A DNA stretch of 64,000 nucleotides from Macrostomum hystrix. Its lineage: Eukaryota > Animalia > Platyhelminthes. The translations under genes were made by a program, and so were the position numbers. The stretch spans positions 11,718,001-11,782,000 of the forward strand of contig CATNEN010000007.1 in NCBI GenBank assembly GCA_950097015.1. Direction: 5' to 3'. Below are positions 16,852 to 64,000 of this stretch, piece after piece. Each line of letters starts with the position of its first letter. Position 1 is the first letter of the stretch. Under the pieces are notes generated by a model, which saw only the letters and a list, made by a program, of their open reading frames with translations, had not been told where the DNA came from and searched no databases.

Positions 16852-19468
16852 CTGAAAGCAGACAAAAGAGTAAAATGACTATTCTATAGATAAACCTAGC
16901 ACTGTGCATACAAAAAACAGATTACAATGCATCTGGTCATGCATTTGGAAATGTACATTTACTTGTGGACTTATTGCTTACTACTAACTTGTGATTCAAT
17001 ATCAAGTAAAGTTAGCTCATATGAGAATAAGTCACATATTATAATTATCTATAAACTAGATAATTCTCTTCTAGATATACAATATATAATAGAGATTTGT
17101 CATATGTATAAAAATACTAATATGCTTTTTTGGTAGAAATAGCTCTAAATGTCAAAATATTTGGACCCTTAATGCTTATAAAAATAAATTAGAACTTGAT
17201 ATAATTTGCATTGAATGGCCACCTGAATATTATCTTGTTTGTGAACAAGTTTACTTTATGTCCCTCAATATTAATTTACAGTGTGTCAATTGATCCAAGT
17301 TAAAACTTATATCTCAAACCTATGAAAATTGTCTAGTTGACTGTTTTTGGTCTAGGCCACAACACTAGTGGTGAGATCTTTTGTCAAGAAAAATGCTATA
17401 TCGAATCCCTATTGATGTTGTTTAACCTCAGGGAAGTAAGTAAAGAAAGAAGCCTCATTATTGGATGCATAAAAGCCAATGTAAGGGCATGGTATTCAGG
17501 TTTTAAAAGTTAACTATTTAGTCAACTTAAGTTAGCAACACAATATTTTAAAGCCTGCTTTCAGTCTCAAGGAAAAGCAAGCTATTTCAGTTAATTATGG
17601 TCCATATAAAGCATATTAAAATTAAAGCTGCAAAGCTCTGCAACTAAAAACTTAGGTTGTCAAATATATATTTTTACATTTTCCCTATGCATATCCATAT
17701 CTTTAAAATTTTCATAAATCCAATCTACATATGTAACTAAATAAAGTTTGTGTGCTACTGTCTGAACCATATCTCACAAGCAATGACTTCAGATCAACCA
17801 ATTATTGAGGGCCCAACAAAAGCCCGTAACATACTGGGGTCTAGGAAAAAAAGTAACAATACAAGGTACATAGGTGGTTGAATATATATAAGAGCATTAT
17901 TTCTTAGGACACTTTCAGGGTAGAACCCCTACAGTACCCCACAAAATATAGATAGGCAATAAGGCATTTAAATATATAGAGCTTGAGTTCACATCACACC
18001 AGGGAATTACGAATTTCCAATGTTGGCAGTCTAAATAATTGTCTAACTAATATAAATTATGTGAAATCTTGGCTAGCTATCTCTAGCCCCTCCCAACAGC
18101 CAGGAAATACACAACCTACAAGGTAAATGTGACATAAAAATTTCTAAGGAAAAGACTATATATCTCAAAGTTTCCACTAGGAAAAGATCCACAATTATAC
18201 AGTAATTATCAGCATTTGTTCAAATTTAGTAATTATATTTAGTATAGTAGATTGATATTACTTATAATATTACAGAAATGTACAATATTAAAATGTTTGT
18301 TCTGACAAGTTTACTATTTTTCTAGGAAAATTCACACTTAACTATAGGAACTTCTCATTTGAAGAATATTGAGGAGATAAAACTCTAATTTGACAAGTAG
18401 GCCTATCTACTTGTGTCATAGAATATTTAAAGCCCATTATAGACAACTGCCAAGCCCTTAGGTAAGAAGTGGTATATAACTAAGAATATATCCACTATGA
18501 CCCATTGCACTATAGGGACAGCAGCTGTGCCAAAAGTCCACATAGCTGGAGATAGCCATTGTGACTCTAGGCAAAGAGTGAGTAAAAACTAGGCAACAGA
18601 GACATGGCAGCTATGTCCCTAGGAATTAGGAGTTAGATGTACAGCCACTGTGACCTATGTCCCTAGTCATAGAAAATTATTAATTATTCTTTGCTAGCTA
18701 ATTTATAATTATGGCAATCCTCTTGTTTTGCATATTTAATTGTTTTACAAAAGATAAATACTTTCTTAACTAATGCAAGTGTAACAGGGCTTATGCCTCT
18801 ACTTTTCTCTCTTGGTAGCGTATCTCTCAGCATGAACAGTTTATCTTTCTAAGGCACTGGTCTCCTATTCTCCAGTCTTTGCTAGGCGTTTTCTGTGGAT
18901 CAGAGGGTCACAGCCTCAAATAACCAACTCAACACTTAAACACCTTCTTGCTCACTGCTCAGTTATAGCTTATTAGCTTTTTGCCACACTGGCACTTTGC
19001 TTTGTCCCACAGGAATTGCAGTCGTTTACATACACAGAAAAAGGTTTGTTAAAATGAATGAATTGGACAGAATATTTATAATATTTTACATATAAAAATA
19101 TTTAGCGCATTTAAACAAAGAGCATAGGTACAAATTTGGCTTATTAAAAAATGATAAAAGCATCCCTACTACACAAGTAAATATTTTAACTTCAAAAAGT
19201 TTTTGAATGACATAGCAGTGCATAGAAAACTCTTTCTCTGTATTAAAAGCAATAGAGAGAAGAGAATCTGTGGGGGGACTAAGCTGGGAAGATGATTTCA
19301 TTATTACCTTATTAGCTTGCCTTGCCTTGTTACCTAATTTCTTACAATCAATGTTACAATATTTTCTGGGTGGCACACTAATACACCATCTGAGTGCACA
19401 ACTATGACATCTGATTGGCTTATTGGTTGTTATTTTTCTTGCTAGTCATTTTCCTTTTTTTGTTTATA

Positions 19469-28471: not shown

Positions 28472-28577
28472 ATGACCGGGTCTCGACACGAGATCTCCAT
28501 CTGCTCTTCTCTCGGACGCCGACTTCCCGCAGTCCTTGTGCTGCTGGCTGTGGCTGTCTGTCCTGCTGATGCCTATA
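28472..28577 (+). CDS. Exon 1 of the giant gene: signal peptide (not in the ORF track)
   Basis: Kozak GCCGCCATG, then MTGSRHEISICSSLGRRLPAVLVLLAVAVCPADAY. Donor A|GTAAGT (phase 1) joins ttcag|CC at 28928 to give TCPSGW. Confidence 0.82.
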
Positions 28578-31500
28578 GTAAGTTGCGCTGGTGTTGCTGG
28601 GATTTAGAATAGTATCTGGGAGACTAGCACGCAGGACCAAGGCTATGTACTCCAGTCACTCTGTGCTTCTGCTAGTCGACTTACTGTCGCATCTAGCAGC
28701 TGGTGCAATTCTTTACCTTTCATGCTTCGTATCACCTGGTCCGTTGGTTCAGTTTGGACTAATCCCGCTCCTTTTAATTTGTTGTTGACTAGTACGAGCT
28801 AATGATCTGCGCCCCTTTTTATCTTGTGCATGACTTCAAGCTGGGTCAAAATTTAAACTTCTAAATGGATAAAATACGAATTGAGCACGCACGTCACGAT
28901 CTCAGAAAATGCCCGCTTCTCATTCAGCCTGCCCCAGCGGCTGGGCGCAGCACTTCGACAAGTGTCTCAAGGCTTATTTCAGCTCCTACAGCTACGAAGC
29001 CAGCAGCAGCTACTGCCGTTTGGGGACCGGCCAGCTCTTTGCGCCCAAGAACAGACACGACCTGAGCCTGTTCGACCACCAATTATTGTCGTATACTTTT
29101 TACGTTGATGCCAAGCGCAACGTGAGTTTAGGCGCTGGCTTCTTCGACAGCACCGGCAGTCCTGTACCTGACGACATTTTCTACATGCGGCACCTGGGCA
29201 GCGGTCTCGACTGCGCCGTCTATAGCGTGTCAGTAGTCAAGCTGGTGCCCGTAAGCTGCTCAACCTCGACAGGATTTATCTGCCAGATCCCTGCGCTGCC
29301 ATCTAATGGTGCGAGCATGTTAAGAATGGGGAAGGTCTCAAAATGCAGGCAGTCAGCGATTAGTTAGTGAAGAAGCCGCTCGGCTTTGATTTGATCTCAA
29401 GTGTTAAAAGTCCAAATAGTTCGAGTTACTACTTCGAGAAATCGCACATTCAAGCTCCAAAGAAGGCAGAGAGCTCAAGTCTTATTTTATAAGATCGAAT
29501 CGAATTCAGGCGCGTATCGATTTTGATTTGACCACCCTCGTGAGTATCGTCTCAGCCTGTTTGCTACACGGCCTGCCAATTTCAGACACTTGCCAGCCGT
29601 CATATGCCGTCTCCTTGAACGCGTTCTATGCAAGCTTGTACGCTTCCAGCCTGTACATCGAAAGCCCGGGCTTCTTTTGGACAGGCAGCTTCGTCATCGG
29701 CCTTCTCCCAGTTTTGCAGTCGAACAGCGCCGGATTTTCCTTGACCTTTTGTTTGGTGAGTTGCGTGGCCGCGGTCTGCTGCAGACTCATGAAGGTTCAG
29801 GGGGTTGTAGCCGAGTGGTTAGAGCTTCGGACTCACGACTTGAAGGTCGGGGGCTCGATTCCCGACTCCACTGAAGCAATTTGTGTCCCACAGTAAGACA
29901 CTAAACTCTGCATTGCTTCAGTTCACCCAGCGGTTAAATGCGTACGAGCATTAGAAATTGAGGGTGAGGTGTTGTGTCCTCCTGTCTGTTATGCTCCCTG
30001 TTTTACCCTTTATGATTGTCGTTCTTGACAATCATGTCGCTTTATAACCTTTTACATCGTATCCCCAAAGTATACGTGCTGAATGTACATTGTGCCAGCA
30101 TATCGAGTCAAGCCAAACTCTCCCCTCTCTCTCTCTTACGAGTATATCGATAATAAATAGCCAGATGCAATGCGTCAGATACTACAATGGACTGAGCAGC
30201 CGTACGCAGCTTTCAGACACGGCTATTACCAAGGTTCACTTTTCCGAGAGAAGATGGCATGTGCGATCACGACTCGCTTTTGTCACTAAATCCTAATTCC
30301 AAAATTGTCAGAAACTTGCAACTTAAATTTTCAGCACAATGTCTAGTCTTTTAAGCGAGAAGAGAAGTTTGGATGTTTATTTAGTTAAGTTTCGTCACAC
30401 GTGTCCCACATAGTTTTTTATAAGCAAAATATCAATAATATACTATGGTGCAAATTTCTTATTGCAATCTGAATATCGATTTATTTCAATCTTAAATCCC
30501 CTTGAGTGAAGTCTCTCGGTTCGCCGGTTCTTTTCAATAAAGTCCTCTATCGGAATGAACAATGTGATAAGTTAGCAACGGCTGGACCAGCTGCATTTTC
30601 GCAGACGGCAGTCAAAACTCTCGAACGCTGCATGCGATCCACACTTTAACAGGCTTATTCAGGCTTCCAATGCTACCCACCCGGCACCGACATTGGAACG
30701 TATCAGATCTACTGGACCAGTAGTACCAATCCTGACTTCGTGGCCAATACTAGGTTTAACTATGATGCTCGCGCAGCCGTGGAGTACATCTGCCTGAGTA
30801 AGCATCATAATCATATCACTGTTTCCCTTTTTCCAACTTGGTTCGCATGTCGATTGAAATAAAAATTTAAATACTCTCTTATGACTGGTAGCTTATAAAT
30901 GATTTGTTCCTCAGTATTGTTAAGGCACTTTAACAACTCAGAATTTCGAAAAATGGCTCAAAATCGTGCTCCAGAAAAAGACGAGATGACTCAGCTGATG
31001 CACGGAATCCCCGGTCGCCTCAGCGTCACCTTGACTGCCAGCAGTTTTACAAGCTTCGCTCGGCCTGAGTATGCCTTGCTGAATAACAGCTTTCGGACTG
31101 GCGGTGAGCTCCCACCTTGTGGGCCAGTAGTCTCCAGGTGCCCAGTGGAATTAGTAGATTAAAAGTGAAGCGAACTGTTAACTCCATGAAGACGTGTTAA
31201 ATATAACTTTAGAGCACAATATGCCACATAGCTGGTTTAAAATGCCTTATCTAAATATAATATTGCCATATTTCAGACCACCGAGTGTGCATCGGGACCA
31301 GCAATTACTTTGGAAAGCTGGATGTGAATCTGGCGGGCGAAGCCTGCATCAACGCAACTGCAGATCCAGAGAGCACCAACGAATGCCGCCTCCACTGTGA
31401 GCGATGCCGCTGCTTCTGGATTGCAGATTCTAGTGCTCACCTGAGCTCTACATGTATAGACTCAACTACTAAGACAAGGCATAGCCATAGTGAAAGCTTT

Positions 31501-40500: not shown

Positions 40501-43500
40501 CTGACTTTGGAGCTTCACTTCCAGCCAAACGCTACCGTTGAGCTGACCGATTTAGTCAACATCAGAGGAGAGCCTATTGAATGTGAGCAATTTGGCCGTT
40601 TCAGGCCTTGTTTTTTGTTAATTATCACAATCGTGCCGCAGCGCCCATTTGTTATTCAAGCGACACTTTCAATCGACTCTGACTATTTAGGAAAAATAAA
40701 ATTGTGTTTTTGAAAAGTGATGAAAAAGTTGCCCATCAACTGGTGCACAAATTTAAAGCGGTATTCTCTCAAATCACTTCCCCTTAGCTTCTACCCCAGC
40801 ATCCGTCAGGCTTGGAAGCAGCTCTGAGAGCTCTGAAGTAGGTGTTCTCTGTAGCTCTAAGTTCATAGGCTTTGCAACTCCTGGAATCCGTGAAAAAGGC
40901 CTTCCAACAATTACAGACTTTAACTTAGGAAACAAACAGAAACATCCATGGTGCAAGGTCTATTGAAAATTGCACCTCACCAGAGGAGCAGACAAACTCT
41001 TCTGACCCCAGGGTTCGAACGTAATTCTAAGACCCCAGAAGAAAAAAGCGACCTAAAAAGGAAATTCCGGAAAATGCTCCCTGCTGATTTTGTCTGCCTG
41101 GCTCCTTTGCATAGGCAAGCTAGCTACCTCAGCTGCACGCGTCACGAGCTACGTTTATAAAGATCAGCAGAAATATTACAATTCCTAGATGTCGTGATCT
41201 AGTATACCACCAGCTGTCTGAAGTCTGAAGTCTAGCAGTCTATTAGTATTTTCCCTATCGTAGATTTTTTACTTGATATTCTAGTGACTATTGCAAAAGA
41301 CTCACGTCCGCAAATTTACCAGCCGAATGCCCACCCGGCTGGCAGCCCAAGTACAACATCTGCCTGCTGGTGATGTCAGCCAAGATGGACTGGAACGCCT
41401 CGCTGGACTACTGCCAGAGCCGGCATTGGAACGGCAGGAACGGCACTCTGTTCATGCCCAAGACGGCAGTCCTCAGGAACTTTGGCCACTACATGTGAGA
41501 CCGGGACAGACTAATGCTTCGCATGTAATCGGATTTTATTTACACCCTAAATTAATAACTACTCTTTATTGAGACTTTGCCATTTCGCCTATAGTTTTGC
41601 GAAAAAAGCAGAAGAATTTTCTCCCGGTGCTGTAGATAGGTGGGATTGAGCGTGACGGTAAGTTTTCTAGGAGCAATCGCATAGATTATTAGTGACCTTT
41701 CGTTTTCAAATCTTAGTTTTAAGATTGAAGTGCGATCATAAAGCATAGAAGAATGAAAGTAAGGACTGCATTTCCTGGTCCACAGGGGGATGACGTTCCA
41801 CGTCGGGATTCGGCGGAACGACACCGCTGACGGTCAGGTCCGCTGGTCGTGGCTGGACGGCTCGGATGTGGAGCCGGGTGCCTTCTACATGGGCCAGCCA
41901 GCTGCTTCTGACTGTGCTGCGCTCGCCACTGACCTCAGCGGTCTCTACCGCACCAGCTGCAGCTCTCCGTGCAGCTTATTGTGCCAGATCCCAAAGAAGA
42001 CTTGTAAGTTCCAGTTTTGAATTATCTTGCACTATTAGACATGTGCTACTTCTGTGTTCCGCCATGACCCGCTAATTGCTAAACGCTCACGTCCTTTTTT
42101 AGGGTCCAACAGACTGCAAACAGTTATAATCAACAGCATCTATTCAATTTCTGATTGGCGCGTGCTGTCGGCTCTACCGCTCTCTGCGTTGCACCTTATT
42201 GACCATTTGCGGCTTTGGAGCCTTGACAGTGCACTTAAATATATCCCTCATACATCTAGTTCAGGGGGGAATGACTTATCCGCGCAGTATCAGTCCATAG
42301 GAGAAGAAAGTTTGCCAGCGCAAACTGCGCCCGGAAGCGCGGTCTATCAGCGGACTGCTATTTGCGATGGTGAGTCAGTCAGTTGAACATGACCAGTTTA
42401 GCTTTGAATACATTTTTCACATATTTTTGCGTGATTAAACCCTTAAGTTAGCATAATCGAGTAACAAAAATTCATTTTTTACTTCAAATCTAACAGGCTG
42501 CATGGAGCCACTTCTATATTCGGAGGCTGGGGGCCTTGACGTCATTATCAACGCATCTTCATATCACCAGCGGAGATCCCCAGACAAGGCGTTCCTTGGC
42601 AGTGTAATGTCTAGCGAATGTAAGCGAGATTTCTTCATTTGAGAAGCTGATACTTCATGACCGGCCCAGGGAAAAGACTTTAAGACCTTAAATACCTCAA
42701 AAACACACTTTCAGATCACGTTCAATGCTTTCTTTCTATGGGTGACTATCTTTACCGCGACAGTGTCTCTAGCGTTTCCGCCAGTGGCCTAGTGTGCAAT
42801 AATTGGACCGACCCTCTGTACAGGAACTATAGTAATCTCTGCCGTAAGTCTCTTCCAACTATTTAGAAAAAAAAGTTCTAAATATTCTTTCAAATTATTG
42901 TTAAATTTTCCCTTGCAGTCAGCACAGCAGGCTCTTATAGCCGGTGTGTGACGTCCAAGGGCTCCGAAAACTGCTATACTCAAAACTTATGCAGTAAGCC
43001 TTTTGCTAGAAGCTTTTTATCATCAAGCATAGTAATTGCACAAATACCTGAACACTGAATACAACCAAATGCTGACAATGGCAGGTCTTGGTTATGATCC
43101 ACCAAGTGGTTACTCGGATTATGCCAACGCTCTTCTAAACAAAGTTCTGTACTTCACGGGCCAGCGAGTAAGCGCATGGTACCAGACCTCCAACCCGATG
43201 GTCTGCATCATCCGCTCGGCTTACATTTCCGTTAGCACTCCAAGTAGCTTTTGGTGGCTGCTCGCTGACTTGAAGACGCAGTTCAGACTTGGCCAAATTA
43301 TCCTTGTACTATGTTAGTAAATCATTGGAAACAAAAAATGATAGAAACTATCCTAAGCATAACTTATTTGCTAATAAACATATTTTAGCCTCGTCTCTGA
43401 CTAGATTCGACTTTAAAGCGAGTAGCACCACCTGGAATATAACTCTTGGCGACTCAGCGTTTGACAATTGGGCGCTGGTCTATCGTTGGGCCAGCGTGGA

Positions 43501-49500: not shown

Positions 49501-52500
49501 GCTTTCAAGTACCTGAAGTCGCATATTTCTTTCAGGCCGTCTTCGATGGTCCCAGAGACGAACTGCAGAGGCGGCGCCACATTCTGTCGAACCCCTTCTT
49601 GGCACAGGCGGTAAAACTGGTGTTTCTCGGGAATCCGTCAGATCCTACAACATTCTACTTTGGCCGCGCGGCTGTGAAGCTTGACCTCATCGGATTTCCA
49701 AATGATACAAGTAAGTAAATTTAGATTTGCGATCGTAAGCTTATATCTGTCTTCCCTTGCTTGGGACCCTTAGAACAGTATAAGTTCTATTTACATTTCA
49801 AAGCCCATTTTTGAAAAGTTGAGGCATCCATAATTGGTGAAAAAGTTTTTTGTCAGGCAGCATTTTCAATTCCGTTGCCCCCTTACTCGCTGTGTTTTAA
49901 TGTGAATCTCCATCGAGAAAACTCACTCGATTGCAGATAGCACACAGGTGTTGGCCACCGAACACAAAATTTCGATGGAGGACTCACGAACTATGCTGGT
50001 GGACTTTCACAACATCTACCATCTGAATTACCTCAAATTTAATCGAAGTTCCTCGGCTCCGCTGCTCTTCCACCTGAGCTTCGAAGAAGTGTATGGTGAA
50101 GTGGAGCTACTGAGGATCTATAACACCACATGGCTGGTAAGGTAACTTTTTCATTCCGTTTCTCAGTTTCTACAAGTTCTTGATCTGTCATGGATGGCTC
50201 TTGCAGTTCAACGTGACAGCCGCCATCCAGAAGGTGACGCTGCCGCAAGTCCTGCAACCGGTGAGGCTGAGGTTTCACCTGCAGAACGGCAGCGGCCCGC
50301 TAAGTCCCAGCGAATTGTCTCTCTTCGGCAAGCGAATCGTTGAGTGCCCGCTCGGCTTCACACCGAGCTTCAACGTGTGCGTCAGAGTGATCACAGTGAA
50401 CGCCAGCCAGGGTGCGGCCCAGAACCACTGCAGAACGTACTTATGGGCGGGGCAGCGCGGTACTCTGTACATGCCCAAGGACGCTCTCAGCATGAGCCTT
50501 CTAAACAAGATGTGAGGATGTGACTGATGTAGAAATCACATTTTTACGTAATGTAATGATATTTTGGGCCCATTGTGAAATTATATGTTTTGAGACATAC
50601 TCTCTTATGTTCTTTATGTGAGCTCACTGAGTTAACAAACGACGGCGTTGAGTTATATTTTTTGCATCATCTGAATTACCCATTTCGGTTCACCTCTACT
50701 CAAGCAGCACAAAAACATTAGTGATGGCGAATTCCAATGGCCAATTCAGAGTCAACAAAACTCAGACTGGGCTAAATCGCATTTCCAGGACTCCCTGGAC
50801 AATACATGTCGGCCTTTCAAGGAACTCGAGCACTGGCCGCTGGGAGTGGTTTGATGGAGAGCCTGTCAGCCTCTCCGCCTGGGTGGTAGAGCGACAAGGC
50901 AACCGGCATGCCGCTTGGCATGTGCTGTACAATGGTCTTGTCCCTGTTGCCTCAGCTGAGTTGAGCCTCTACTTTGCCTGCCAGCTTACCATGCCTAAAA
51001 GTGAGTTTTCGTTTATTTTTTTCTTTCGGCTGGTAATACAATGCCAAATTTTTCAATGCAGGTAACGGCCAATGCGTCAGAGGTGTACTGATGCAATATG
51101 GGTACTTAGCTAGTTCTTTGGCCTCCTACAATTTACGAGACGTGAACTCCATGGCCGCGGTCTCGAGCTACAACTCCATGGACGAAAAATATCGGAACTA
51201 CTCAATCTCCATAGTTTACTACTCTTCACCTTACTTTAACCTCATTGACGGATCCTATTGGCACTCAATATTCTACTTTGGAGATCCCAATGGAAAACTT
51301 GAATACGCCGTGTGCGTTAGCAAAGGTACTTCGTGGCATGGAAATATTGCTTAATTGTTTTTTGTACCTGATACACCAGATAAAGTAGTTATTAGCACAA
51401 ATTCCAATTTTTCAGAATGAATTAATTATATTTTATGCGTATTTGCTTCTAAAAGATTCTTAGAAACCAATTTCGCTACTTTAGACTGCATTCAGCCGCT
51501 GCTGCCCGGAATTCCTGGGCAGCTAAAAGTGCAGCTCAGCAGTCGTGGCCGTTCGTCCTACCACCGTCCTGAGGACGCAATTATGGGTAGCATCTTGACT
51601 AGCGGCGGTGAGTTCATGGTTGATAAGACCTCGTAGGAAAATAGTTCCGCGCTCCAGTTCATCTGCTTCAGTTCACCCAGTTGTAGAATCGACACCAGAA
51701 TCCAGTAGCTTCATTTCACCCAGTTGTAGAATCGACACCAGAATCCAGTAGCTTCAGTTCACCCAGTTCTAGAATCGACACCAGAATCCAGTAGCTTCAT
51801 TTCACCCAGTTGTAGAATCGACACCAGAATCCAGTAGCTTCATTTCACCCAGTTGTAGAATCGACACCAGAATCCAGTAGCTTCATTTCACCCAGTTCTA
51901 GAATCGACACCAGAATCCAGTAGCTTCAGTTCATCCAGCTGTAGAATCGACACCTGAATCCAGTAGCTTCATTTCACCCAGTTGTAGAATCGACACCAGA
52001 ATCCAGTAGCTTCATTTCACCCAGTTCTAGAATCGACACCAGAATCCAGTAGCTTCATTTCACCCAGTTGTAGAATCGACACCAGAATCCAGTAGCTTCA
52101 TTTCACCCAGTTGTAGAATCGACACCAGAATCCAGTAGCTTCAGTTCACCCAGTTGTAGAATCGACACCAGAATCCAGTAGCTTCAGTTCACCCAGTTGT
52201 AGAATCGACGCCAGAATCCAGTAGCTTCAGTTCACCCAGTTCTAGAATCGACGCCAGAATCCAGTAGCTTCAGTTCACCCAGTTGTAGAATCGACACCAG
52301 AATCCAGTAGCTTCATTTCACCCAGTTGTAGAATCGACACCAGAATCCAGTAGCTTCAGTTCACCCAGTTGTAGAATCGACACCAGAATCCAGTAGCTTC
52401 AGTTCACCCAGTTGTAGAATCGACGCCAGAATCCAGTAGCTTCAGTTCACCCAGTTCTAGAATCGACGCCAGAATCCAGTAGCTTCAGTTCACCCAGTTC

Positions 52501-55500
52501 TAGAATCGACGCCAGAATCCAGTAGCTTCAGTTCACCCAGTTGTAGAATCGACACCAGAATCCAGTAGCTTCAGTTCACCCAGTTGTAGAATCGACACCA
52601 GAATCCAGTAGCTTCAGTTCACCCAGTTGTAGAATCGACACCAGAATCCTGTAGCTTCAGTTCATCCAGTTGTAGAATCGACACCAGAATCCAGTAGCTT
52701 CATTTCACCCAGTTGTAGAATCGACACCAGAATCCAGTAGCTTCAGTTCACCCAGTTGTAGAATCGACACCAGAATCCAGTAGCTTCAGTTCACCCAGTT
52801 GTAGAATCGACACCAGAATCCAGTAGCTTCAGTTCATCCAGCTGTAGAATCGACACCAGAATCCAGTAGCTTCATTTCACCCAGTTGTAGAATCGACACC
52901 AGAATCCAGTAGGTTCATTTCACCCAGTTCTAGAAACGACACCAGAATCCAGTAGCTTCAGTTCACCCAGTTGTAGAATCGACGCCAGAATCCAGTAGCT
53001 TCAGTTCACCCAGTTGTAGAATCGACGCCAGAATCCAGTAGCTTCAGTTCACCCAGTTGTAGAATCGATGCCAGAATCCAGTAGCTTCAGTTCACCCAGT
53101 TGTAGAATCGATGCCAGAATCCAGTAGCTTCAGTTCACCCAGTTCTAGAATCGACACCAGAATCCAGTAGCTTCATTTCACCCAGTTGTAGAATCGACAC
53201 CAGAATCCAGTAGCTTCAGTTCACCCAGTTGTAGAATCGACACCAGAATCCAGTAGCTTCAGTTCACCCAGTTGTAGAATCGACACCAGAATCCAGTAGC
53301 TTCATTTCACCCAGTTCTAGAATCGACGCCAGAATCCAGTAGCTTCAGTTCATCCAGCTGTAGAATCGACACCAGAATCCAGTAGCTTCATTTCACCCAG
53401 TTGTAGAATCGACACCAGAATCCAGTAGCTTCAGTTCACCCAGTTGTAGAATCGACACCAGAATCCAGTAGCTTCAGTTCACCCAGTTGTAGAATCGACA
53501 CCAGAATCCAGTAGCTTCATTTCACCCAGTTCTAGAATCGACACCAGAATCCAGAAGCTTCAGTTCACCCAGTTGTAGAATCGACACCAGAATCCAGTAG
53601 CTTCATTTCACCCAGTTGTAGAATCGACACCAGAATCCAGTAGCTTCATTTCACCCAGTTGTAGAATCGACACCAGAATCCAGTAGCTTCATTTCACCCA
53701 GTTCTAGAATCGACACCAGAATCCAGTAGCTTCATTTCACCCAGTTGTAGAATCGACACCAGAATCCAGTAGCTTCATTTCACCCAGTTCTAGAATCGAC
53801 ACCAGAATCCAGAAGCTTCAGTTCACCCAGTTGTAGAATCGACACCAGAATCCAGTAGCTTCATTTCACCCAGTTGTAGAATCGACACCAGAATCCAGTA
53901 GCTTCATTTCACCCAGTTGTAGAATCGACACCAGAATCCAGTAGCTTCATTTCACCCAGTTCTAGAATCGACACCAGAATCCAGTAGCTTCATTTCACCC
54001 AGTTGTAGAATCGACACCAGAATCCAGTAGCTTCATTTCACCCAGTTGTAGAATCGACACCAGAATCCAGTAGCTTCATTTCACCCAGTTCTAGAATCGA
54101 CACCAGAATCCAGTAGCTTCAGTTCACCCAGTTGTAGAATCGACACCAGAATCCAGTAGCTTCATTTCACCCAGTTCTAGAATCGACACCAGAATCCAGT
54201 AGCTTCATTTCACCCAGTTGTAGAATCGACACCAGAATCCAGTAGCTTCAGTTCACCCAGTTGTAGAACCGACACCAGAATCCAGTAGCTTCAGTTCACC
54301 CAGTTGTAGAATCGACACCAGAATCCAGTAGCTTCAGTTCACCCAGTTGTAGAATCGACGCCAGAATCCAGTAGCTTCAGTTCACCCAGTTGTAGAATCG
54401 ACGCCAGAATCCAGTAGCTTCAGTTCACCCAGTTCTAGAATCGACGCCAGAATCCAGTAGCTTCAGTTCACCCAGTTCTAGAATCGACGCCAGAATCCAG
54501 TAGCTTCAGTTCACCCAGTTGTAGAATCGACACCAGAATCCAGTAGCTTCAGTTCACCCAGTTGTAGAATCGACACCAGAATCCAGTAGCTTCAGTTCAC
54601 CCAGTTGTAGAATCGACACCAGAATCCTGTAGCTTCAGTTCATCCAGTTGTAGAATCGACACCAGAATCCAGTAGCTTCATTTCACCCAGTTGTAGAATC
54701 GACACCAGAATCCAGTAGCTTCAGTTCACCCAGTTGTAGAATCGACACCAGAATCCAGTAGCTTCAGTTCACCCAGTTGTAGAATCGACACCAGAATCCA
54801 GTAGCTTCAGTTCACCCAGTTGTAGAATCGATGCCAGAATCCAGTAGCTTCAGTTCACCCAGCTGTAGAATCGACACCAGAATCCAGTAGCTTCAGTTCA
54901 CCCAGCTGTAGAATCGACGCCAGAATCCTGTAGCTTCAGTTCACCCAGCTGTAGAATCGACACCAGAATCCTGTAGCTTCAGTTCATCCAGTTGTAGAAT
55001 CGACACCAGAATCCAGTAGCTTCAGTTCACCCAGTTGTAGAATCGACACCAGAATCCAGTAGCTTCAGTTCACCCAGTTGTAGAATCGACACCAGAATCC
55101 AGTAGCTTCAGTTCACCCAGTTGTAGAATCGACACCAGAATCCAGTAGCTTCAGTTCACCCAGTTGTAGAATCGACACCAGAATCCAGTAGCTTCAGTTC
55201 ACCCAGAATATGCTGGGTTAGAGATTTGTGTGCTGTTGCGGCCTCCTTAGCTCAGTCCACGGACTGACAGCCTGTGGAAACGCTGTTCCATTAAACCATA
55301 GGGCTAAGCCTTAACAACAGCGAATCTCTAAGCATAGGAAAGCTTCGTTATTATTGAAACTCGCGCGCCAATTGCAGCTCCATGCGTTCACAATCGCGGG
55401 GACGGCAAATTCTACCTGTATGACCTGAATGTGACAGCCGAAGGTATCGCCTGCCTCCCAGAGACTGAAGACAGTGCGGCTGGTCTGACCTACAATCGCC

Positions 55501-58500
55501 AGTGCTTCAGCCGTAAGCGCTTCCTAAATGATGTGCGACCTATGGCACTAGAAGACACAAACCTCACTTTCCCGTAAAATTAAACATATTCGAAGAATGT
55601 TCGAAACAGGACATGCAGCTTTAGTTGTAAAAATTCAAGTTGATTAACTGAAGAGGTGTGCTTTATTAAGCTATTATTAACTTTCTACTGACCATTGCTC
55701 CAGGGAACCCGTATGAGCAGCCTTCGTGCAACACTAATTTAGGCCGGAAAACATGCATCGATTTCAGCTGCTGTAAGCGCACAACACAATCAACCTTCCC
55801 GAATCTCTTCGGTACATAAACGTTTTTCAATTTACTAGAAGGCGCTGTTTTGTTTTCAGTCGATTACTACCATCTAGTGACCAGCGACAGGCAGATCGGC
55901 GGTCAAAATGCTGCTAGAAACAAAGCGGTGTGGATGAACGGTCGCAGCATTTCCACCACAAACACCGACAGTAGAGGCTTTATTAGAGTACTCACACCCA
56001 GCTCTCTTGCGGACACGATCACCCTTCACTGGCTGCTGGTCGACCTCAAGCTCCGCCACACGATCACTGGCGTGGAGCTGGAGCGCTCCCATGGTACGAT
56101 TACTAGCTTATGCGCTAGCTTTCTCTGCCGTTATCAGTGACGATTTTAGCGCGTGAAGATTAATTGCTTTATAGAAAGTACAAGCGACGATGTAGACAAC
56201 ATCCCTGTATTTTAAAAGTTATTTTATATATGTTATTTGATGTAATAATAATAAGCGTGATCAAATGTGTCTACGGCCTTCTTAATCGAAAAGTTGGTTT
56301 TCTACTCGACCCCAGGCGCGGAGGACCATTTCCCACTAATCGTCATTGTCGGCAACAAGTTCAACATGTCTGCCGGCGAGACCGAGTTTCAAGACTGGCC
56401 TCTGTGCGACTCAATCGAGTTTTCCACAGGCAGTCTGCAATACAGCCTCATCTGCAGCCAGCCGATGCAGGCCAGATACGTGGCTGTCACTCGACCTGCG
56501 GACATGGGAATACTCAACTTAACAAGCCTGTTTGTTTATGCGGAGGAATGTGAGTCACCAAAAGTGTATAAGCTCGTGCTAAAAATACACTTTTTACTGC
56601 AGGGGTCGGAAAACTCGGGCTCGACCCGGCCCTAGAAGCTCCCGGCCTGTTGCCCCTTCCGATACCTACAGTATCATTTTTCATCTCTCCTGTGTCTCAT
56701 CTATCCCGTGTCTCACCTCTCCCGTGTCTCATTTCTCGTGTGTCTCATCTCTTTCTTGTCTCATCTCTCCCGCATCTCATCTCTCCTGTGTCTCATTTCT
56801 CCTGTGTCTCATCTCTTACCTGTCTCATATTTTCCCTGTCCATCTCTCCTGTGTCTTATCTCTCCTATTTCATATTTCTACAGTCAATGCGGCCCGCTGT
56901 CTTCATTTAGGTTCTCTTTTTGGCCTGCTAGCTAATAAGTTTGCCGACCCCTGGTTTACTTCCTTTTTTCAACCCATCTCGCTAATATAATGTACATCTC
57001 ACTCATCTACGAGCTCAATCTGAAACTCGCGATCGTAGTTATGCAACATAAATATGCCCGGTAATATTTTATATCGCGCATATACTATTCCCACTGCTTC
57101 CAGTGTACGAGTATGCCGCATATGTGGACAAGCGAGTTCATTGGTTCCCCGATGAAGCTGTTTTCGACGCCTTGGCAACACAGAACGCGACACTCTTCAT
57201 ACGGATTCTGTCCAGAGTGGCAAAGATTTGGCTGACCAATCAGTTTGGATATCTGGAAGCGATGACAAATGTATGTTGTTGCGATTGTGTAAAAACAATG
57301 TTCAAGTGAACGAATATTCCTTGCAATGCACTCGCGAATGCCGATTCACTATCGAATTTCAGCCGAGGTACATGGTGCTGTTGAAGGGAGACGGGCTGAG
57401 CGGGATCTCCTACTTGGGAGTTGTGGTGGAGCACAGCGACTACTCGTCTTCAAACGCGTCGTTTTACACGCTCGGATCACTGAATACCACCCTGAATCGG
57501 TCGGTGCAGTTCAACACCGACGACTTTGCTCAAGTCTGCGTCACGTGGCAGGCAGCTGGTGGAGTAACCGTGATCAGGACCTTCGTAAATGGTGTTCAAG
57601 TCGGCGAATCATCGGATGCCATCTACGGCATTCCGGTCCTGAAAGTTGGCTTTTCTAACGATGTACTGAGCTCATCGACTGGCAACATTCATGTGTATTT
57701 CAACGTTCCCAGCACCAAGAGTGTAGGATCCTTCAGACCGACGGCCTTTCAGGGAGCTAGCCTTGAACATATATACCTACAGGTTGAGTAACTGCTTTGC
57801 TGGTAAAGCTGGGCTTCAAGTATGAGAAGCCTGTTCTGTTTTTATCGTCAAATAAAAACTCCAGATCCTTCCTCAGAGAGGATAACTAACATTATAAACA
57901 AAGTAGAACTTTATTTCGTCACTGCAGGCAATATTCGACAAGTTTGTCCGCCTGCAATGGATAACACTGCTTGGTGGCCCCGGAAGTAGCTCTATCGGAG
58001 ACTTCATGACCTTGGTCAGAGCTTTCAACATCACCCACAGTGATGAGGCGCGCTACTGGAGAATTTATTACGCCTCGATAGTGAGTCAGTGCAGTTTCTA
58101 AGGGACTGTCGCTGTTCTGTTGTACTTTTGCGCTATTTAAATACGACAATTTCTTTTAAACGAAAAGACGTAAAATAATGGAAATGGATTTTGTAACAGA
58201 AAAATAGCATTTTTAATTTCTTAATTCATCTAGATATAGAAAGTGCCACTAGTGCTATTAATAACAATAAGCCAGCTACGCTCGTATTATTTTTTTTTAA
58301 ATGCAGCCCGTTGGAGGTCCGCGAGACAATCCCCGCCAGGCTGCCAGTTTCCGCTTTCTGCCCTTCCTATTGACTCTCGGTGTGCGGCTGTTTCCCATTC
58401 AAGCTGTCAACATCCCGGAGTTCAAGCTGCAGCTTTACGGCTGCATCTACTGTAAGCCACTACCAATGTCCCTGTCGCATTCATTTCTTCATCCGAATAT

Positions 58501-61500
58501 CCTGTCACACTTCTCGCAGCCTCACGGGACTTTGTTCTGCCCATCTTGGTCTCCGCGGCAAAGAAGCGTCTGGCGAGCTCATCGACCACCTCCGAGTTGT
58601 ACGGAAATGACGGGGTGGTCTCTACCACTTCGACTATGTCTACTGCCTTTGAGGACTATGCAAACGTGTACCACTACTGGATGCTGGACTTAGGAATTGG
58701 TACCACAGTGAAATACATCCGAGTTTTTAGCGCAATAAACAGTAAGTTTCTTCTTAAAGAGAATTATATTATTCGCATATTACTCGTTTATACTTAACTA
58801 ACAGGTTGCATGATTGCTCAATCTACTCGAGAAAATTCACCATTTTGAACCATTTTTTCTTATTTATACCCCCCTCAAAGAGATTATGCAGTGGTAAAAA
58901 AAACTATTTTTTCTGATAAACCCCTATTAGGAGTTTCATTCAGAAAAATGATTCAGTAGGCACGAAATTCATAGCCACAAAAGTGCAGCTTGCCATTGGA
59001 ACTTCGATTGCTTTAGATTATTACGGCGGAGACGTGTGCTCATCAAGCTCAGATAAATCTAGCTACTTCGGTAAAACCAACGTAACGATTGGCGGCATCC
59101 CCTGCCAGAACTGGAAAGCATCGACGCCCCAAACAATATCCGCGAATTGCCGAATGGACTCGAATTTCCCGAGTAACAATAGGACGGCATCAGAGAACTT
59201 TTGCCGGCGGTGTGAAACAGACGGCGGCAGCTTCTTCTGCTACACGATGGATCCCTCTGTGACGGTTCAGACCTGTCAAGTGATGCCATGTAGCGCAAGC
59301 TATTTGAGATTCGGTAATAATACTTTAGCTATCCTGGAATATATTCGCGTATGGTGCAGGAGACCACTAATGTCGAACTGAACACCTGCCATAATTAAAA
59401 ATAAGTGAAAAAACTGAAACTATTTGAACACAGATTACGAGGAACTTGATTTCACGGAGATGTTTATCTCCAATACTTCAACAATCGATGATCCAGCGAT
59501 CAAGGTGGTTGAGCGGCGTGGCCAAGGTCGTGTCAATGAGCACATGTGGCTTGTGGAGAACATCGACGCGGTAATGATTTTTTCTAGATGTACCTTATCT
59601 CACATTTTTAAATCCGGCAATGGAATTCTGGACTTAACAGGCTGACATTGAGCATATTTCGAGTAGAAAACCAAAGGTAAATGGCTAATTAAATTAAACT
59701 ACAACACTATTTAGACTGGAGGCCAGCTGCATATACAGCCAAAGTCAGAAAGTCTAAAATAAAAGACATTGCTTTACTGACAGTCCAGGACTATACTATT
59801 TCAGAGTGCATTGATTTGATTCAGATGATAAAATACAGTCGTCACTCCTTCCTACGAAAGGTGGCCAGATATGCCGGACTCCGAAAGCTGACAGAGTACA
59901 GACGCCGCATCAGCTTTACCGAGTTCGAGGTCTTTGGCTTTCCTACCATCAGTGAGTACACAGTAAATATTACAATGTGCCTTATTAAGCTTTAATGTCA
60001 GCTCGTAACAAAACCAAACATGTCCTCCAGGTCAGCTGCATCTGTTGGGAAACCCAATCGGAATAGAAGATGGAGTCATCGAGCCTAACCAGTTCGATGC
60101 TCAGAAGGACAGAGTTGTAACTTACCCCACCTATCCTTTAGTTGCATCGCCACACATGCTTCGCCTAAACTCTCCTCAAAAGCCAATGCAGCCACCGGGA
60201 ATGTTCATGAACGCGTATATTCAGCCAGGTTAGACTTTTGGGAATGATATTATGAAGCTTTTCAGCACTCAAAGGTACGAGCGAGTGTAAGTACTGCATT
60301 TTTGTTTTCAGCAAAAGTGCTAATCTACTTGACAACAAGGCACACAGTCATTGGCTTTGTGGTGCAAGGTGCGTCCATCTCGGACAACAGCAGCACTTGG
60401 AAGTCCTACTCCAGGATTTTCAACTTTTCTTATGGAGACGATCCACGGGCACTTGTACCATATCAGTCGTTTCAGAGATCAAACACGCTAAGCGTTGTGA
60501 GTTGATTCCATCGACAAGTTTTATCTGCGCTATAAGCATACTTCTTGTTATTGAATGCCAAACGTTTCGATATGAAACTCAATTTCAGCACACATTCAGT
60601 GCGGCTTATGGAGGCGAGAATCTGGCAGTCCGAGTGGACCTCCCAGTACCGATTAGGACCAGAATTGTCGAGTTTGCATTTGAAGGATCAAATTATTCGA
60701 CATATATGTACTACACCATCTGGCAAAACAGAAAAGCCATTCGATTGGAAATCCTAGGCTACCCTGATGGTGAGCACTACTGAATTGTTCGACCGAACTC
60801 CTGAACTCCTAAAAATAAACGGTTGGGTTGCTGCTACCTTAGTCGAAAGGGTCGATCGCCCCGTAGGCTTCTCTAACCTTAAAGCTGTAATTTAAAAAAA
60901 AGTTTCACTTCATGTTGACTATCGTAACAAGAGAAGCCCTGGCAAATAAACACGGTAGCCCAGACAAGTAATGTGGAAATCCTTCCACAAAAATGCTTCC
61001 GCCAAGATTCCGCTGTCTCCTTCAAATTACACCTGTTTCAGGGGAAACTCCAATCCTGGAGAGTCCTCCTCTAGTTATTTTGACTCGAAGGAAACTCTTA
61101 TCCAAGAGAGTCCTGCTGCTCTCACGTGTCCTTATGAAACTCTTATCCAAGAGAGTCCTGCTGCTCTCACGTGTCCTTATGAAACTCTTATCCAAGAGAG
61201 TCCTGCTGCTCTCACGTGTCCTTATGAAACTCTTATCCAAGAGAGTCCTGCTGCTCTCACGTGTCCTTATGAAACTCTTATCCAAGAGAGTCCTGCTGCT
61301 CTCACGTGTCCTTATGAAACTCTTATCCAAGAGAGTCCTGCTGCTCTCACGTGTCCTTATGAAACTCTTATCCAAGAGAGTCCTGCTGCTCTCACGTGTC
61401 CTTATGAAACTCTTATCCAAGAGAGTCCTGCTGCTCTCACGTGTCCTTATGAAACTCTTATCCAAGAGAGTCCTGCTGCTCTCACGTGTCCTTATGAAAC

Positions 61501-64000
61501 TCTTATCCAAGAGAGTCCTGCTGCTCTCACGTGTCCTTATGAAACTCTTATCCAAGAGAGTCCTGCTGCTCTCACGTGTCCTTATGAAACTCTTATCCAA
61601 GAGAGTCCTGCTGCTCTCACGTGTCCTTATGAAACTCTTATCCAAGAGAGTCCTGCTGCTCTCACGTGTCCTTATGAAACTCTTATCCAAGAGAGTCCTG
61701 CTGCTCTCACGTGTCCTTATGAAACTCTTATCCAAGAGAGTCCTGCTGCTCTCACGTGTCCTTATGAAACTCTTATCCAAGAGAGTCCTGCTGCTCTCAC
61801 GTGTCCTTATGAAACTCTTATCCAAGAGAGTCCTGCTGCTCTCACGTGTCCTTATGAAACTCTTATCCAAGAGAGTCCTGCTGCTTTCACTTGTCCTTAT
61901 GAAACTCTTATCCAAGAGAGTCCTGCTGCTCTCACGTGTCCTTATGAAACTCTTATCCAAGAGAGTCCTGCTGCTCTCACGTGTCCTTATGAAACTCTTA
62001 TCCAAGAGAGTCCTGCTGCTCTCACGTGTCCTTATGAAACTCTTATCCAAGAGAGTCCTGCTGCTCTCACGTGTCCTTATGAAACTCTTATCCAAGAGAG
62101 TCCTGCTGCTCTCACGTGTCCTTATGAAACTCTTATCCAAGAGAGTCCTGCTGCTCTCACGTGTCCTTATAAAACTCTTATCCAAGAGAGTCCTGCTGCT
62201 CTCACGTGTCCTTATAAAACTCTTATCCAAGAGAGTCCTGCTGCTCTCACGTGTCCTTATGAAACTCTTATCCAAGAGAGTCCTGCTGCTCTCACGTGTC
62301 CTTATGAAACTCTTATCCAAGAGAGTCCTGCTGCTCTCACGTGTCCTTATGAAACTCTTATCCAAGAGAGTCCTGCTGCTCTCACGTGTCCTTATGAAAC
62401 TCTTATCCAAGAGAGTCCTGCTGCTCTCACGTGTCCTTATGAAACTCTTATCCAAGAGAGTCCTGCTGCTCTCACGTGTCCTTATAAAACTCTTATCCAA
62501 GAGAGTCCTGCTGCTCTCACGTGTCCTTAGGAAACTCTTATCCAAGAGAGTCCTGCTGCTCTCACGTGTCCTTATGAAACTCTTATCCAAGAGAGTCCTG
62601 CTGCTCTCACGTGTCCTTAGGAAACTCTTATCCAAGAGAGTCCTGCTGCTCTCACTTGTCCTTATGAAACTCTTATCCGAAAGAGTCCTGTAGTTTTCGC
62701 TCGTTGGGCTCGGTCTGATGCCTTGGTGGAGGTCCGCCGAAGTCCGTCGAAGACGTCTGAGGTTTTTGGATTCTCGGGAATCACGTATTTATAGCCGACC
62801 CCTCCCATGCGATGCCATTCGCTGAGGCTCATTCGAGCTCTCTCATTGGCCGGAATGAAGTCACAGACGGAAATTGTACGGGTGTGCCACAAGAGCGGTG
62901 GAAAAACAATGGAAATATCAGCCAACTTGCGGCTTTCGCATTCACGACCTTAAAACATTGCGACGCAATGAATAACAGAAGAGTATCCAACCTTTTTAAA
63001 TCGTTCCTGTGTTTTTCAAATAGATAAAGAATGAATATGGTTCGCTAGTAATGTCACGAGTACGCTAGCTAGTACACTAGTATGCGCTAGTATGCTATGT
63101 CACGCTCACATTTTATCTGGAATCGCTTGCAGACTGCGATTTGATTGGGTTCGACCAGGTGACCGCCAGCAGTGAATCGAGTGTGCAGCTGCGCTTCGTC
63201 TTTAATGAGGTCTACCACTTCACGGGCTTCTCGCTGAACTCCAGCCTGCCCGTGGAATTCCAACTGCAGTATAAATCCATGAGGAACTGGACGTTCATCA
63301 ACTTCACCGTGCTTGGAACTGTTACGGTAGGGCTTAGCATTATTGCGAGTGCTTCTTTTATCAATTTTATTGCGCACCCTGAGTTACATAACAACACAAT
63401 AATTGAACTAAGGTGATGTCTTTGAATTCGTATCTTTCAACTCGAAAGCGGGATTTAATTGCGATTAGTGATTTCTTATAGTAAAAAGTTAGTACTTCGG
63501 ACTGTAAAAGTTATAGAAAGGAAACATCAGGTTTGTAGGCTATATTTAATGCAAATTTCGGAGTTATGTGGCTTCTGGTGTGTCATAAGTAATGTCACTG
63601 AGGGAAAAATAGACCAACTGGCAATCCCAGATGAGCAAAGCTCTTTCAATCAACAACACCAATGTCCCCCAATATCAATCACCCTCTGGCAGTGCTCGTA
63701 CAGCTTCTTGAACCTCAGCCTGCAGGTGTTTTTCCTTCAACTGCCGGAACCAGTGTAACGCTGCTTATTTGACCTCGACATGGTTTGCGAAACTTCTCTT
63801 GGAAAAGTCTGCCTTCAGTCACTTGTATAGAAACCGGTCGCACAAGCTAAAGTCTGGGCTGCAGGGACTCTGCCAGAGTAGATTCACTCGCCGTCCAGAA
63901 AATCCGAAACAACAGGTGTGCGGTCGTGCGTTATCCATCTGGCGCAGCACATCGTTCAGGTGAATCGGGTTTGACCGGAGCGAGTGCCAGAGGCCTCCAG
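28472..64000 (+). CDS. Giant multi-exon secreted mosaic protein: signal peptide plus three macro-repeats of CTLD / F5/8-C / kringle-like / F-type lectin / LamG-FAMeT-like domains; continues past the window end
   Basis: Dozens of short same-strand GT-AG exons. The junctions I checked are phase-compatible. The same ordered series of exons recurs three times (~28.9-40.6 kb, ~41.3-50.3 kb, ~50.3-64 kb). Not every junction was verified. Confidence 0.78.
28928..29308 (+). CDS. C-type lectin-like domain 1
   Basis: CPSGWAQHFDKCLK..YEASSSYC..GQLF..FYVDA..DCAVY..VSCSTSTGFICQIP. Confidence 0.85.
29800..29950 (+). mobile_element. tRNA-derived SINE (A/B boxes and core)
   Basis: A box GTAGCCGAGTGG, degenerate B box GGCTCGATTCCC, then a core-like AAGACACTAAACTCTGCATTGCTTCAGTTCACCCAGC..AAATG. 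Related fragments lie at 27440-27525 and 21140-21180 on the minus strand. Confidence 0.75.
32987..33576. mobile_element. Complete 590-bp non-autonomous DNA transposon with TTAA flanks (piggyBac-like target site)
   Basis: TTAA|CAGTAGGACTACCA ... TGGTAGTTCTACTG|TTAA. Second copy at 25842. Confidence 0.85.
34141..34665. repeat. 49-bp tandem repeat, ~11 copies, spanning an exon/intron boundary
   Basis: Unit GGACCGGGTGAGCTGGCCATATGGAATGTGTGCAGTTCAAGCAAGATTG. Confidence 0.96.
37388..38072 (+). CDS. F-type lectin-like domain of macro-repeat 1 (three exons)
   Basis: LLSRNQPA..ALTDG..WIYIDMGYSRNFSHVVTF ... TARYLTVKK..LSFAEIEVYG. Counterparts at 45635-46248 (VAVDLG..ARYFGV..SICEIEIYG) and 58520-59952 (WMLDLG..ARYAGL..SFTEFEVFG). 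Confidence 0.72.
38241..38672. repeat. 63-bp intronic tandem repeat, ~7 copies
   Basis: Unit GCCCCATTGCCATCCGTGGCCCTGGCATGCGGCATTAAGAAAGTCCTCTTACCTC(C/T)ACCCCTT. Confidence 0.95.
41323..42003 (+). CDS. C-type lectin-like domain 2 (two exons)
   Basis: ECPPGWQPKYNICL..WNASLDYC..GTLFMPK | FHVGIRR..WSWLDGS..DCAAL..TSCSSPCSLLCQIP. Confidence 0.85.
46493..49005 (+). mobile_element. Internally deleted Ty3/Gypsy LTR retrotransposon in an intron; LTRs ~46493-46698 and 48804-49005
   Basis: LTRs TGTAGTGCA...TGCACTACA, 5-bp TSD CAACT, PPT GAGGGGGAGAGA. Gag with CCHC knuckle (CNLCGKRNHLAS). Integrase with HHCC and DDE (VDVCGPFP..TDNA..GEVERFNRSL). Frameshifts and stops are present. Confidence 0.95.
50340..51001 (+). 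CDS. C-type lectin-like domain 3 (two exons)
   Basis: ECPLGFTPSFNVCV..AQNHC..GTLYMPK | IHVGLSRNSSTGRWEWFDG..YFACQL. Confidence 0.8.
51665..55207. repeat. 43-bp intronic satellite, ~82 copies (GCTTCAGTTCACCCAGTTGTAGAATCGACACCAGAATCCAGTA)
   Basis: Directly visible 43-bp period. Confidence 0.98.
56685..56870. repeat. Degenerate ~16-bp pyrimidine-rich repeat (TCTCATCTCTCCTGTG)
   Basis: Directly visible. Confidence 0.85.
59030..59292 (+). CDS. Kringle domain in macro-repeat 3
   Basis: C..SYFGKTNVTIGGIPCQNW..ENFCR..FFCYTMDPSVTVQTCQVMPC has the canonical kringle cysteine and motif pattern. Confidence 0.88.
61091..62690. repeat. 45-bp intronic satellite, ~35 near-identical copies (GAAACTCTTATCCAAGAGAGTCCTGCTGCTCTCACGTGTCCTTAT)
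   Basis: Directly visible; lies between exons ending ~60769 and starting ~63133. Confidence 0.98.

Follow-up and report, generated by a model that had tools for sequence, protein, structure and literature searches.

A triplicated lectin-type cassette in the flatworm Macrostomum hystrix is probably part of the ectodomain of a giant polycystin-1-family protein

Background

Polycystin-1 and its relatives, the polycystin-1/receptor-for-egg-jelly (REJ), or PKD1, family, are central to kidney disease, ciliary sensing and sperm-egg signalling, and the ligands of their ectodomains are largely unknown. In mammals, the N-terminal region of polycystin-1 (PC-1), which includes a C-type lectin domain, activates the PC-1/PC-2 channel (PMC7728438). 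In the sea urchin, the PKD1-family proteins SpREJ1-10 combine C-type lectin domains, sometimes SUEL as another lectin type, and EGF with PKD repeats, REJ, PLAT and 1-11 membrane helices, the elements ahead of REJ being limited to CTLD, SUEL, EGF, WSC and PKD repeats, and have been shown to be expressed in sperm and to play roles in the acrosome reaction (PMC1934368). These proteins are 1,450-3,716 amino acids (aa) long, and neither kringle and discoidin domains nor a repeated multi-domain cassette is mentioned for them (PMC1934368). Among flatworms, pkd1L genes of the planarian Schmidtea mediterranea are expressed in sensory neurons and are needed to sense flow or vibration (PMC11448475). Here we describe a region of the genome of another flatworm, Macrostomum hystrix, in a stretch of 64,000 nucleotides (nt) that we call the window (plus strand of contig 7, positions 11,718,001-11,782,000, in an assembly that totals 220 Mb in 42 contigs). 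From position 28472 to its end, the window carries three successive copies of a long cassette of lectin-type and related domains, and comparative sequence analysis suggests that this region is probably the start of a single very large gene of the polycystin-1/REJ family.

The predicted gene and its polycystin core

The gene was modelled with a custom dynamic programme that employs self-trained codon usage and splice matrices and grants a bonus for conservation in paralogues. In addition to the window, 40 kb of downstream DNA and 200 kb of contig 29, chosen via an exon search, were analysed. All database and fold searches were run with single exons, and the joined model served only for length, hydropathy and short alignments. 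The resulting model joins 91 exons into a single open reading frame (ORF) that encodes 8,856 aa and extends from the ATG at 28472 to a stop at window+25,368. The first 57 of these exons fall within the window and account for about 3,790 aa, in agreement with the first-pass annotation of this DNA, which had estimated 3,500 aa or more and a frame still open at the window end. The length of the predicted protein is about 8,300-8,900 aa, with an uncertainty of a few hundred residues. The model takes in every paralogue-conserved segment except for repeats and a single stretch of 219 nt where the last two exons meet. The conserved exons are all open, including stop-free exons of 4,156 and 1,376 nt, and their phases are compatible; the disabling frameshifts for which the first-pass annotation had allowed do not appear in them. 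The first exon, which that annotation took for a signal peptide, indeed contains a hydrophobic core that is the first hydropathy peak of the protein, and its donor joins the exon of the first C-type lectin-like domain (CTLD) in phase; no counterpart of this exon was detected in the contig-29 paralogues.

Beyond the window, the same strand carries, in order, the last exon of the third cassette copy, a fourth, rearranged unit (D), a fifth CTLD (unit E), a Fibrinogen_C domain (4e-18), an EGF-like exon, the 4,156-nt exon (1,385 aa) with a PKD repeat (2e-13) and then REJ, which is encoded by an exon outside the window (window+18,680-19,177; Pfam E 2.2e-23). Unit D comprises a CTLD, an F5_F8_type_C_2-like region, a LamG-like exon, a kringle-like exon and a true discoidin domain, the exon profile of which matches factor V C2 (E 1.6e-3). 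After the signal peptide, the hydropathy plot contains no strong peak for about 7,800 aa, followed by the first transmembrane helix (TM1), the strongest peak of all, and about ten further peaks (11-12 after residue 7,830, the helix count being approximate). PLAT-like sequence comes directly after TM1; the second half-domain exon alone scores 21.9 bits against a Pfam cut-off of 23 (E 3e-4). Polycystin_dom (Pfam E 2.9e-28) and PKD_channel (5.9e-30) complete the series, which places the core from REJ to the channel 14-25 kb beyond the window. Because the same ORF can be extended into REJ, TM1, PLAT, the polycystin domain and the PKD channel, the triplicated part probably forms the ectodomain of a membrane protein of the polycystin-1 family and not the secreted protein that the first-pass annotation had proposed. 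That annotation had also suggested looking downstream for a PKD C-terminus, and it is this C-terminus that is present.

The order of elements in the predicted protein, namely, signal peptide, N-terminal C-type lectin domain, PKD repeat(s), REJ, TM1, PLAT, further helices and PKD-type pore, is the order in human polycystin-1 (PKD1, 4,303 aa). The overall layout is that of an already described family. The flatworm protein is, however, about twice as long as its human relative and contains five CTLDs versus one, along with kringles and F-type lectin, LamG-like and fibrinogen-like domains that are not reported for PC-1; conversely, no LRR, WSC or LDL-A was seen, Pfam detects a single PKD repeat, and the H-L-T triad of GPS is absent. 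Known members of the PKD1 family span 1,450-4,303 aa, compared to the 8,300-8,900 aa predicted here, and, unlike this gene, the planarian PKD proteins have no reported lectin domains (PMC11448475). In the literature that we searched, no PKD1-family protein with kringle, F-type lectin or fibrinogen-like domains is described, nor does any work on REJ or PKD1 in combination with kringle, discoidin or F-type lectin describe such a protein. A word-indexed search with a 1,394-aa exon returned one metagenome fragment (53% identity), and the same kind of search with the channel exon, which is blind to proteins much longer than the query, returned no match.

One gene or several

One argument for a single gene comes from the paralogues, which are found on contig 29 and at six further loci of the same genome. 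On contig 29, four of them are arranged head-to-tail between 3.549 and 3.745 Mb and align with the present gene exon for exon, starting with the first CTLD and ending with the channel; the only gene boundaries in this array are those that separate a channel exon from the first CTLD that comes next, and the C-terminal cores are 54-79% identical to that of the gene on contig 7. A profile of one cassette exon (E8, in the first F-type-lectin-like domain) has 28 matches in the genome, all of them 20-55 kb upstream of a PKD_channel match on the same strand, at 11 loci. The copy described here occupies a separate locus on contig 7, is about 50% divergent from its paralogues and has an intronic retroelement and minisatellites of its own. 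In the second of the contig-29 paralogues (3,654,000-3,697,700), the matches in two large exons are fragmented and a TGA lies inside the PKD_channel match, so that this copy may be decaying. Six further loci of the genome have full-length, high-scoring PKD_channel matches and look like PKD2-like partners.

A different possibility, and an unlikely one in our estimation, is that the region comprises two or more transcription units, with a secreted multi-lectin protein of units A-C, perhaps also D-E, made from an mRNA of its own and a shorter polycystin-1-like gene starting further along; the two could, for instance, be adjacent members of a trans-spliced operon. The parts of the predicted gene are tied together by sequence and not by RNA, and operon-like clusters have been noted in this genome. 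The 1.8-kb gap that follows position 63326 is the longest between conserved exons and counts in favour of separate units; however, it is filled by a dispersed repeat and corresponds to about 85 bp in the paralogues. Within the region, the tandem genes with their own starts that the first-pass annotation had considered are not apparent either: in units B, D and E, no in-frame ATG lies in the open stretches of the CTLD exons, no second signal peptide is seen ahead of these units, and several of the junctions between units are short introns, the one between D and E measuring 90 nt. Moreover, cassettes B and C share one reading frame because a single stop-free exon, 59-60% identical to the paralogues over 100 aa, spans both without an intron. 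Together with the contig-29 array, in which the repeat unit extends from the first CTLD to the channel, and with the E8 profile, which never finds the cassette exon without a downstream channel anywhere in the genome, these observations favour a single gene. That the contig-7 gene is an intact-looking but silent or decaying member of the large family, perhaps no longer expressed, is very improbable: one of the four contig-29 copies does show broken matches and the TGA in the channel exon, and the large introns here carry a retroelement and minisatellites, but the conserved exons, the long stop-free ones included, are open in compatible phases, and frames and cysteine patterns are retained in spite of about 50% protein divergence from the paralogues.

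Several points weigh against the reading of the region as the start of one giant polycystin-1-family gene. We infer a single transcript from a model in which all splice junctions and exon boundaries are predicted; nine of the predicted exons have no paralogue support, and GT and AG sites are so plentiful that a conservation-guided programme easily finds some frame-preserving path. Half of the domains of the cassette have no fold assignment, and both structure predictions were unusable. The function that we infer for the protein is drawn wholly from analogy with other family members. Finally, the 458-aa exon that precedes TM1 has no Pfam GPS match and lacks the H-L-T triad, and the GPS motif is a hallmark of the polycystin-1/REJ family. 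The equivalent stretch (window+21,122 to +21,631) reads F-R-S-N-L-F-G both here and in three of the four contig-29 paralogues, the degraded copy being different; about 105 residues before TM1, there is a basic cluster, RRHR in this gene and RRRG in the paralogues.

Recurrence and age of the cassette

The first-pass annotation had described a super-module of about 1,200 aa occurring in triplicate, and this description is borne out. A cassette of about 18 exons, the families of which we denote by numbers up to E18, recurs three times (units A, B and C; 1,279, 1,195 and 1,325 aa) with matching order, exon sizes and splice phases. The sizes (A/B/C, in nt) are 129/123/144, 120/129/135, 240/228/234, 240/237/234, 170/170/167, 370/345/360, 88/88/127, 215/200/194 and 136/136/133, and for each of these exon families the splice model gives an identical entry phase in the three units. 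Iterated searches among stop-free stretches (BLASTP, phmmer, jackhmmer) link the CTLD exons at 28.9, 41.3+41.8 and 50.3+50.8 kb, the exons with the 'HGIPG' motif at 31.0, 42.5 and 51.5 kb, and the exon pairs of the first F-type-like domain at 31.9+32.6, 43.1+43.4 and 55.9+56.3 kb; further collinear links connect 38.0, 46.1 and 59.8 kb, and 38.7, 49.1 and 60.3 kb. When each cassette copy was combined with its positional orthologues from contig 29 into a sub-profile, and these were compared exon by exon, E values among A, B and C ranged from 6.5e-7 to 3e-14 for E4 and from 1e-4 to 2e-8 for E7, and reached 3e-6 for E16 between B and C (values for E5, E8, E10 and E15 are given in Table 1); in the best families, E lay between 1e-9 and 1e-14. 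The links between cassettes are weak for E10, E12 and E17.

Over nine exon families (701 columns kept), the cassettes of this gene are 20-23% identical to one another, whereas identity between each of them and its positional counterpart in the contig-29 genes is 47-51%. In the maximum-likelihood tree, the A, B and C positions form separate groups, each with 100/100 support, and in each of them the copy from this gene is the sister to the contig-29 copies. The paralogue rows were chosen by tblastn with position-specific queries, and the gap of 50% versus 22% was judged too large for this choice to matter. Because the cassettes group by position, with 47-51% identity within a position against 20-23% between positions, the triplication is older than the duplication that gave rise to these separate genes, which fits the ancient intragenic duplication invoked by the first-pass annotation.

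Domain composition of the cassette

Judged from sequence comparisons, the cassette is made up, in order, of a CTLD, a degenerate kringle, an F-type-lectin-like domain, a LamG/ConA-like sandwich, a putative further sandwich (E11), a second F-type lectin domain and two more putative sandwiches. The domain labels that the first-pass annotation had assigned differ considerably in how well they withstand scrutiny. Those of the CTLD, the kringle-like exon and the second F-type lectin are upheld, as is the general view of the region as a mosaic of lectin-type folds; the first F-type lectin and LamG labels receive weak support; and the three F5/8-C labels find none.

Pfam Lectin_C is matched in all three units (28.9, 41.8 and 50.8 kb) and twice more further downstream. 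EPN or QPD, together with WND, are the calcium and sugar ligand motifs of C-type lectins. In the alignment, none of the five CTLDs contains EPN or QPD plus WND, the nearest being a QPA in B and an EPS in E, and the CTLD of copy C has lost two conserved cysteines. The E5 profile (15 rows) matches 42 solved chains, nearly all of which are kringles (HGF 5e-6, angiostatin 7e-6, prothrombin 1e-4). Because this match covers only the first half of a kringle, and E5 and E6 of cassette B jointly contain six cysteines at a shortened kringle spacing, the recurring exon encodes a degenerate kringle. A complete kringle exon (Pfam 9.1e-11, above the cut-off), which the first-pass annotation missed, is nested within the second F-type lectin domain of cassette C; the insertion is shared by cassette C of the contig-29 genes, and cassettes A and B have a short non-kringle exon in its place.

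For the second F-type lectin domain, the E12 profile matches the solved structures 2j1r (fucolectin-related protein, 1.8e-4), 3cqo (1.7e-3), 3le0 (3.8e-3) and 1k12 (eel agglutinin), with FBP32 and Sm-hPAF among the names. The fucose-binding triad of F-type lectins is His...Arg...Arg. Copies A and C lack the histidine that aligns with the 'THT' of known lectins; copy B, which reads 'CWIHN...YVAVDL...ARSDDDK', is the only one with a histidine near the triad position, displaced by one residue in this copy and its orthologues. The arginine positions of the triad fall across an exon junction. For the first F-type-like domain, the sole solved-structure match of the E8 profile is eel fucolectin 1k12, and this match is weak (E 0.06). 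The LamG/ConA-like sandwich (E9-E10) is suggested by the cassette C copy, which matches Pfam Laminin_G_3 below the cut-off (E 7.6e-4), and no solved structure was matched. A library-wide search with the LamG-like exon retrieved only a 191-aa protein fragment from Macrostomum lignano (E 3e-10), the best public match to any cassette exon, and a pentraxin-like repeat protein from Saccoglossus (E 1.2e-4); WD40 matches in the same search were discarded as spurious.

The positions labelled F5/8-C, that is, E11, E15-E16 and E17-E18 (35.5, 38.7 and 40.2 kb and the corresponding copies), contain motifs that look discoidin-like, and no significant Pfam or solved-structure match was obtained for any of them. 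In cassette C, E15 opens with 'PIGIEDGVIEPNQ', a discoidin-like start without a database match. Searches of solved structures with the E7, E10, E11, E15 and E17 profiles returned nothing significant. In profile-profile comparisons, the E15 family gave a negative result with the true discoidin exon of unit D, and the links E17-E15 and E7-E12 were likewise negative or weak. AlphaFold2 models of E15 (17 rows, pLDDT 41) and of the unit D discoidin exon (4 rows, pLDDT 37) were too poor to use, and the ESM Atlas queried with E15 showed low recognition and gave no usable lead.

Possible function

By analogy with characterised family members, the predicted protein might associate with a PKD2-like channel subunit, either in sperm or in a ciliated sensory cell. 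With its long ectodomain, it would capture or sense a ligand or force outside the cell and so gate the channel; the ligand of such an ectodomain need not be a sugar. A considerably bolder scenario, which we regard as doubtful, is that macrostomid flatworms have expanded a class of giant polycystin-1-like receptor-channel subunits specific to their lineage, with at least 11 members and with ectodomains of 5,000-7,000 aa made of diverged lectin-type cassettes, in which the extracellular ligand would differ for each paralogue and cassette position. Conceivably, such proteins would serve in combinatorial chemosensation or in mate or gamete recognition and would gate TRPP-type channels without autoproteolysis at the GPS.

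A family member of twice the length of human polycystin-1, with an old triplicated lectin-type cassette and without the self-cleavage triad, would widen the range of designs known in this family. It would also provide a naturally occurring series of ectodomain variants with which to study the control of the channel by the outer arm. The locus described here contributes an independent copy that is about 50% diverged, a triplication dated before the gene duplication, and the observation that, genome-wide, the cassette occurs only upstream of channel exons.

Features of the locus

The exons of the three cassettes and the intronic elements of the window are collected in Table 1.

Table 1. Predicted exons and intronic elements between position 28472 and the end of the window
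Feature	Position in window	Strand	Evidence and remarks
Exon 1: start codon and signal peptide (MTGSRHEISICSSLGRRLPAVLVLLAVAVCPADA, then Y)	28472..28577	+	First ATG of open stretch
A: CTLD, single exon	28928..29362	+	Pfam Lectin_C E 4.7e-5, above cut-off; 43% identical to first CTLD of contig-29 paralogues
A: two predicted linker exons, uncertain	29586-29755, 30653-30797	+	Splice model only; no paralogue conservation; lengths sum to 315 nt, therefore frame holds with or without both
A: E4, E5 kringle-like, E6	30975-31103, 31277-31396, 31772-31837	+	Profile comparisons; E5 versus kringles
A: first F-type-lectin-like, E7 and E8	31922-32161, 32634-32873	+	E8 comparisons among A, B and C 1e-9 to 1e-13
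A: LamG/ConA-like, E9 and E10	33978-34147, 34925-35294	+	Position; 43% identity to paralogues; fold label from cassette C copy
A: E11	35388-35449 + 35545-35842	+	Beta-sandwich, type unverified; conserved in four paralogues; no solved-structure match
A: second F-type lectin, E12, E13 and E14	37388-37633, 37694-37890, 37985-38072	+	E12 profile; E14 linked among A, B and C
A: E15, E16	38733-39088, 39558-39711	+	Discoidin-like by motif only; E15 A-B 1.7e-9
A: E17, E18	40161-40375, 40447-40582	+	Last domain of unit; conserved in paralogues; no fold match; E18 ends ...GEPIE, then next CTLD
B: CTLD	41323-41494 + 41786-42003	+	Pfam Lectin_C E 1e-3 (second exon); 76% and 55% identity to paralogues
B: linker exon	42103..42369	+	Four paralogue matches, E 1e-9; no Pfam match
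B: E4, E5 kringle-like, E6	42497-42619, 42715-42843, 42919-42993	+	Profile links
B: first F-type-lectin-like	43085-43312, 43389-43625	+	Profile links
B: LamG/ConA-like	43740-43909, 44293-44637	+	53% identity to paralogues; E10 B-C 8e-4
B: E11	45044-45184, 45267-45414	+	Conserved in paralogues
B: second F-type lectin	45625-45861, 45929-46062, 46160-46247	+	Pfam F5_F8_type_C_2 E 0.006; F-type lectin profile matches
Long terminal repeat (LTR) retroelement remnant, intronic, not part of protein	46466..49071	+	Direct repeats 46466-46761 and 48780-49071, about 300 bp
B: E15, E16	49057-49418, 49536-49710	+	57% and 50% identity to paralogues
B: E17	49937..50136	+	Paralogues, splice model
Bridging exon: E18 of B and first half of C CTLD (...LFGKRIVECPLGF...)	50207..50511	+	Stop-free; read directly from sequence
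C: CTLD, second half	50705..51000 (acceptor 50705 or 50789)	+	Pfam Lectin_C E 0.027; profile links
C: predicted linker exon, uncertain	51062..51325	+	Splice model only; no paralogue match
C: E4	51464..51607	+	Profile links
Intronic 43-bp minisatellite, about 80 copies	51650..55190	.	Head-to-tail; fills most of 3.8-kb intron
C: E5 kringle-like	55378..55512	+	E5 B-C 4.8e-8
C: first F-type-lectin-like	55860-56093, 56316-56549	+	Profile links
C: LamG/ConA-like	57104-57270, 57363-57722	+	Laminin_G_3 7.6e-4, below cut-off
C: E11	57928-58080, 58307-58451	+	Paralogue comparison
C: second F-type lectin	58520-58741, 59434-59570, 59825-59951	+	Full kringle exon nested at 59017-59313; exon 59434-59570 conserved in four paralogues
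C: E15 (split), E16	60031-60228 + 60312-60496, 60589-60769	+	Paralogue and profile links
Intronic 45-bp tandem repeat, unit ETLIQESPAALTCPY	60950..62720	.	Open in two frames for >520 codons
C: E17	63133..63326	+	Paralogues, splice model; partner E18 1.1 kb past window end
Dispersed repeat in intron running off window	63572..63993, on to about window+650	.	Genome copies

Several of the introns are occupied by repetitive elements. The LTR retroelement remnant lies in the intron between E14 and E15 of cassette B. Its direct repeats enclose an ORF with an integrase core (Pfam rve, 1.9e-11) and a zinc-binding motif of the integrase type, whereas a reverse transcriptase was not seen in the same interval. 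The 45-bp tandem repeat in cassette C was considered as coding sequence and rejected: it is read as intronic because the corresponding intron of the contig-29 paralogues measures only about 70 bp. The dispersed repeat at the end of the window is represented in the genome by at least 40 copies, with 84-87% identity, on many contigs. The stretch covered by the 43-bp minisatellite displays a strong negative GC skew. Three further short blocks of intronic tandem repeats lie at 34150-34700, 38200-38690 and 56570-57000, the third of which also matches repeats on contig 29.

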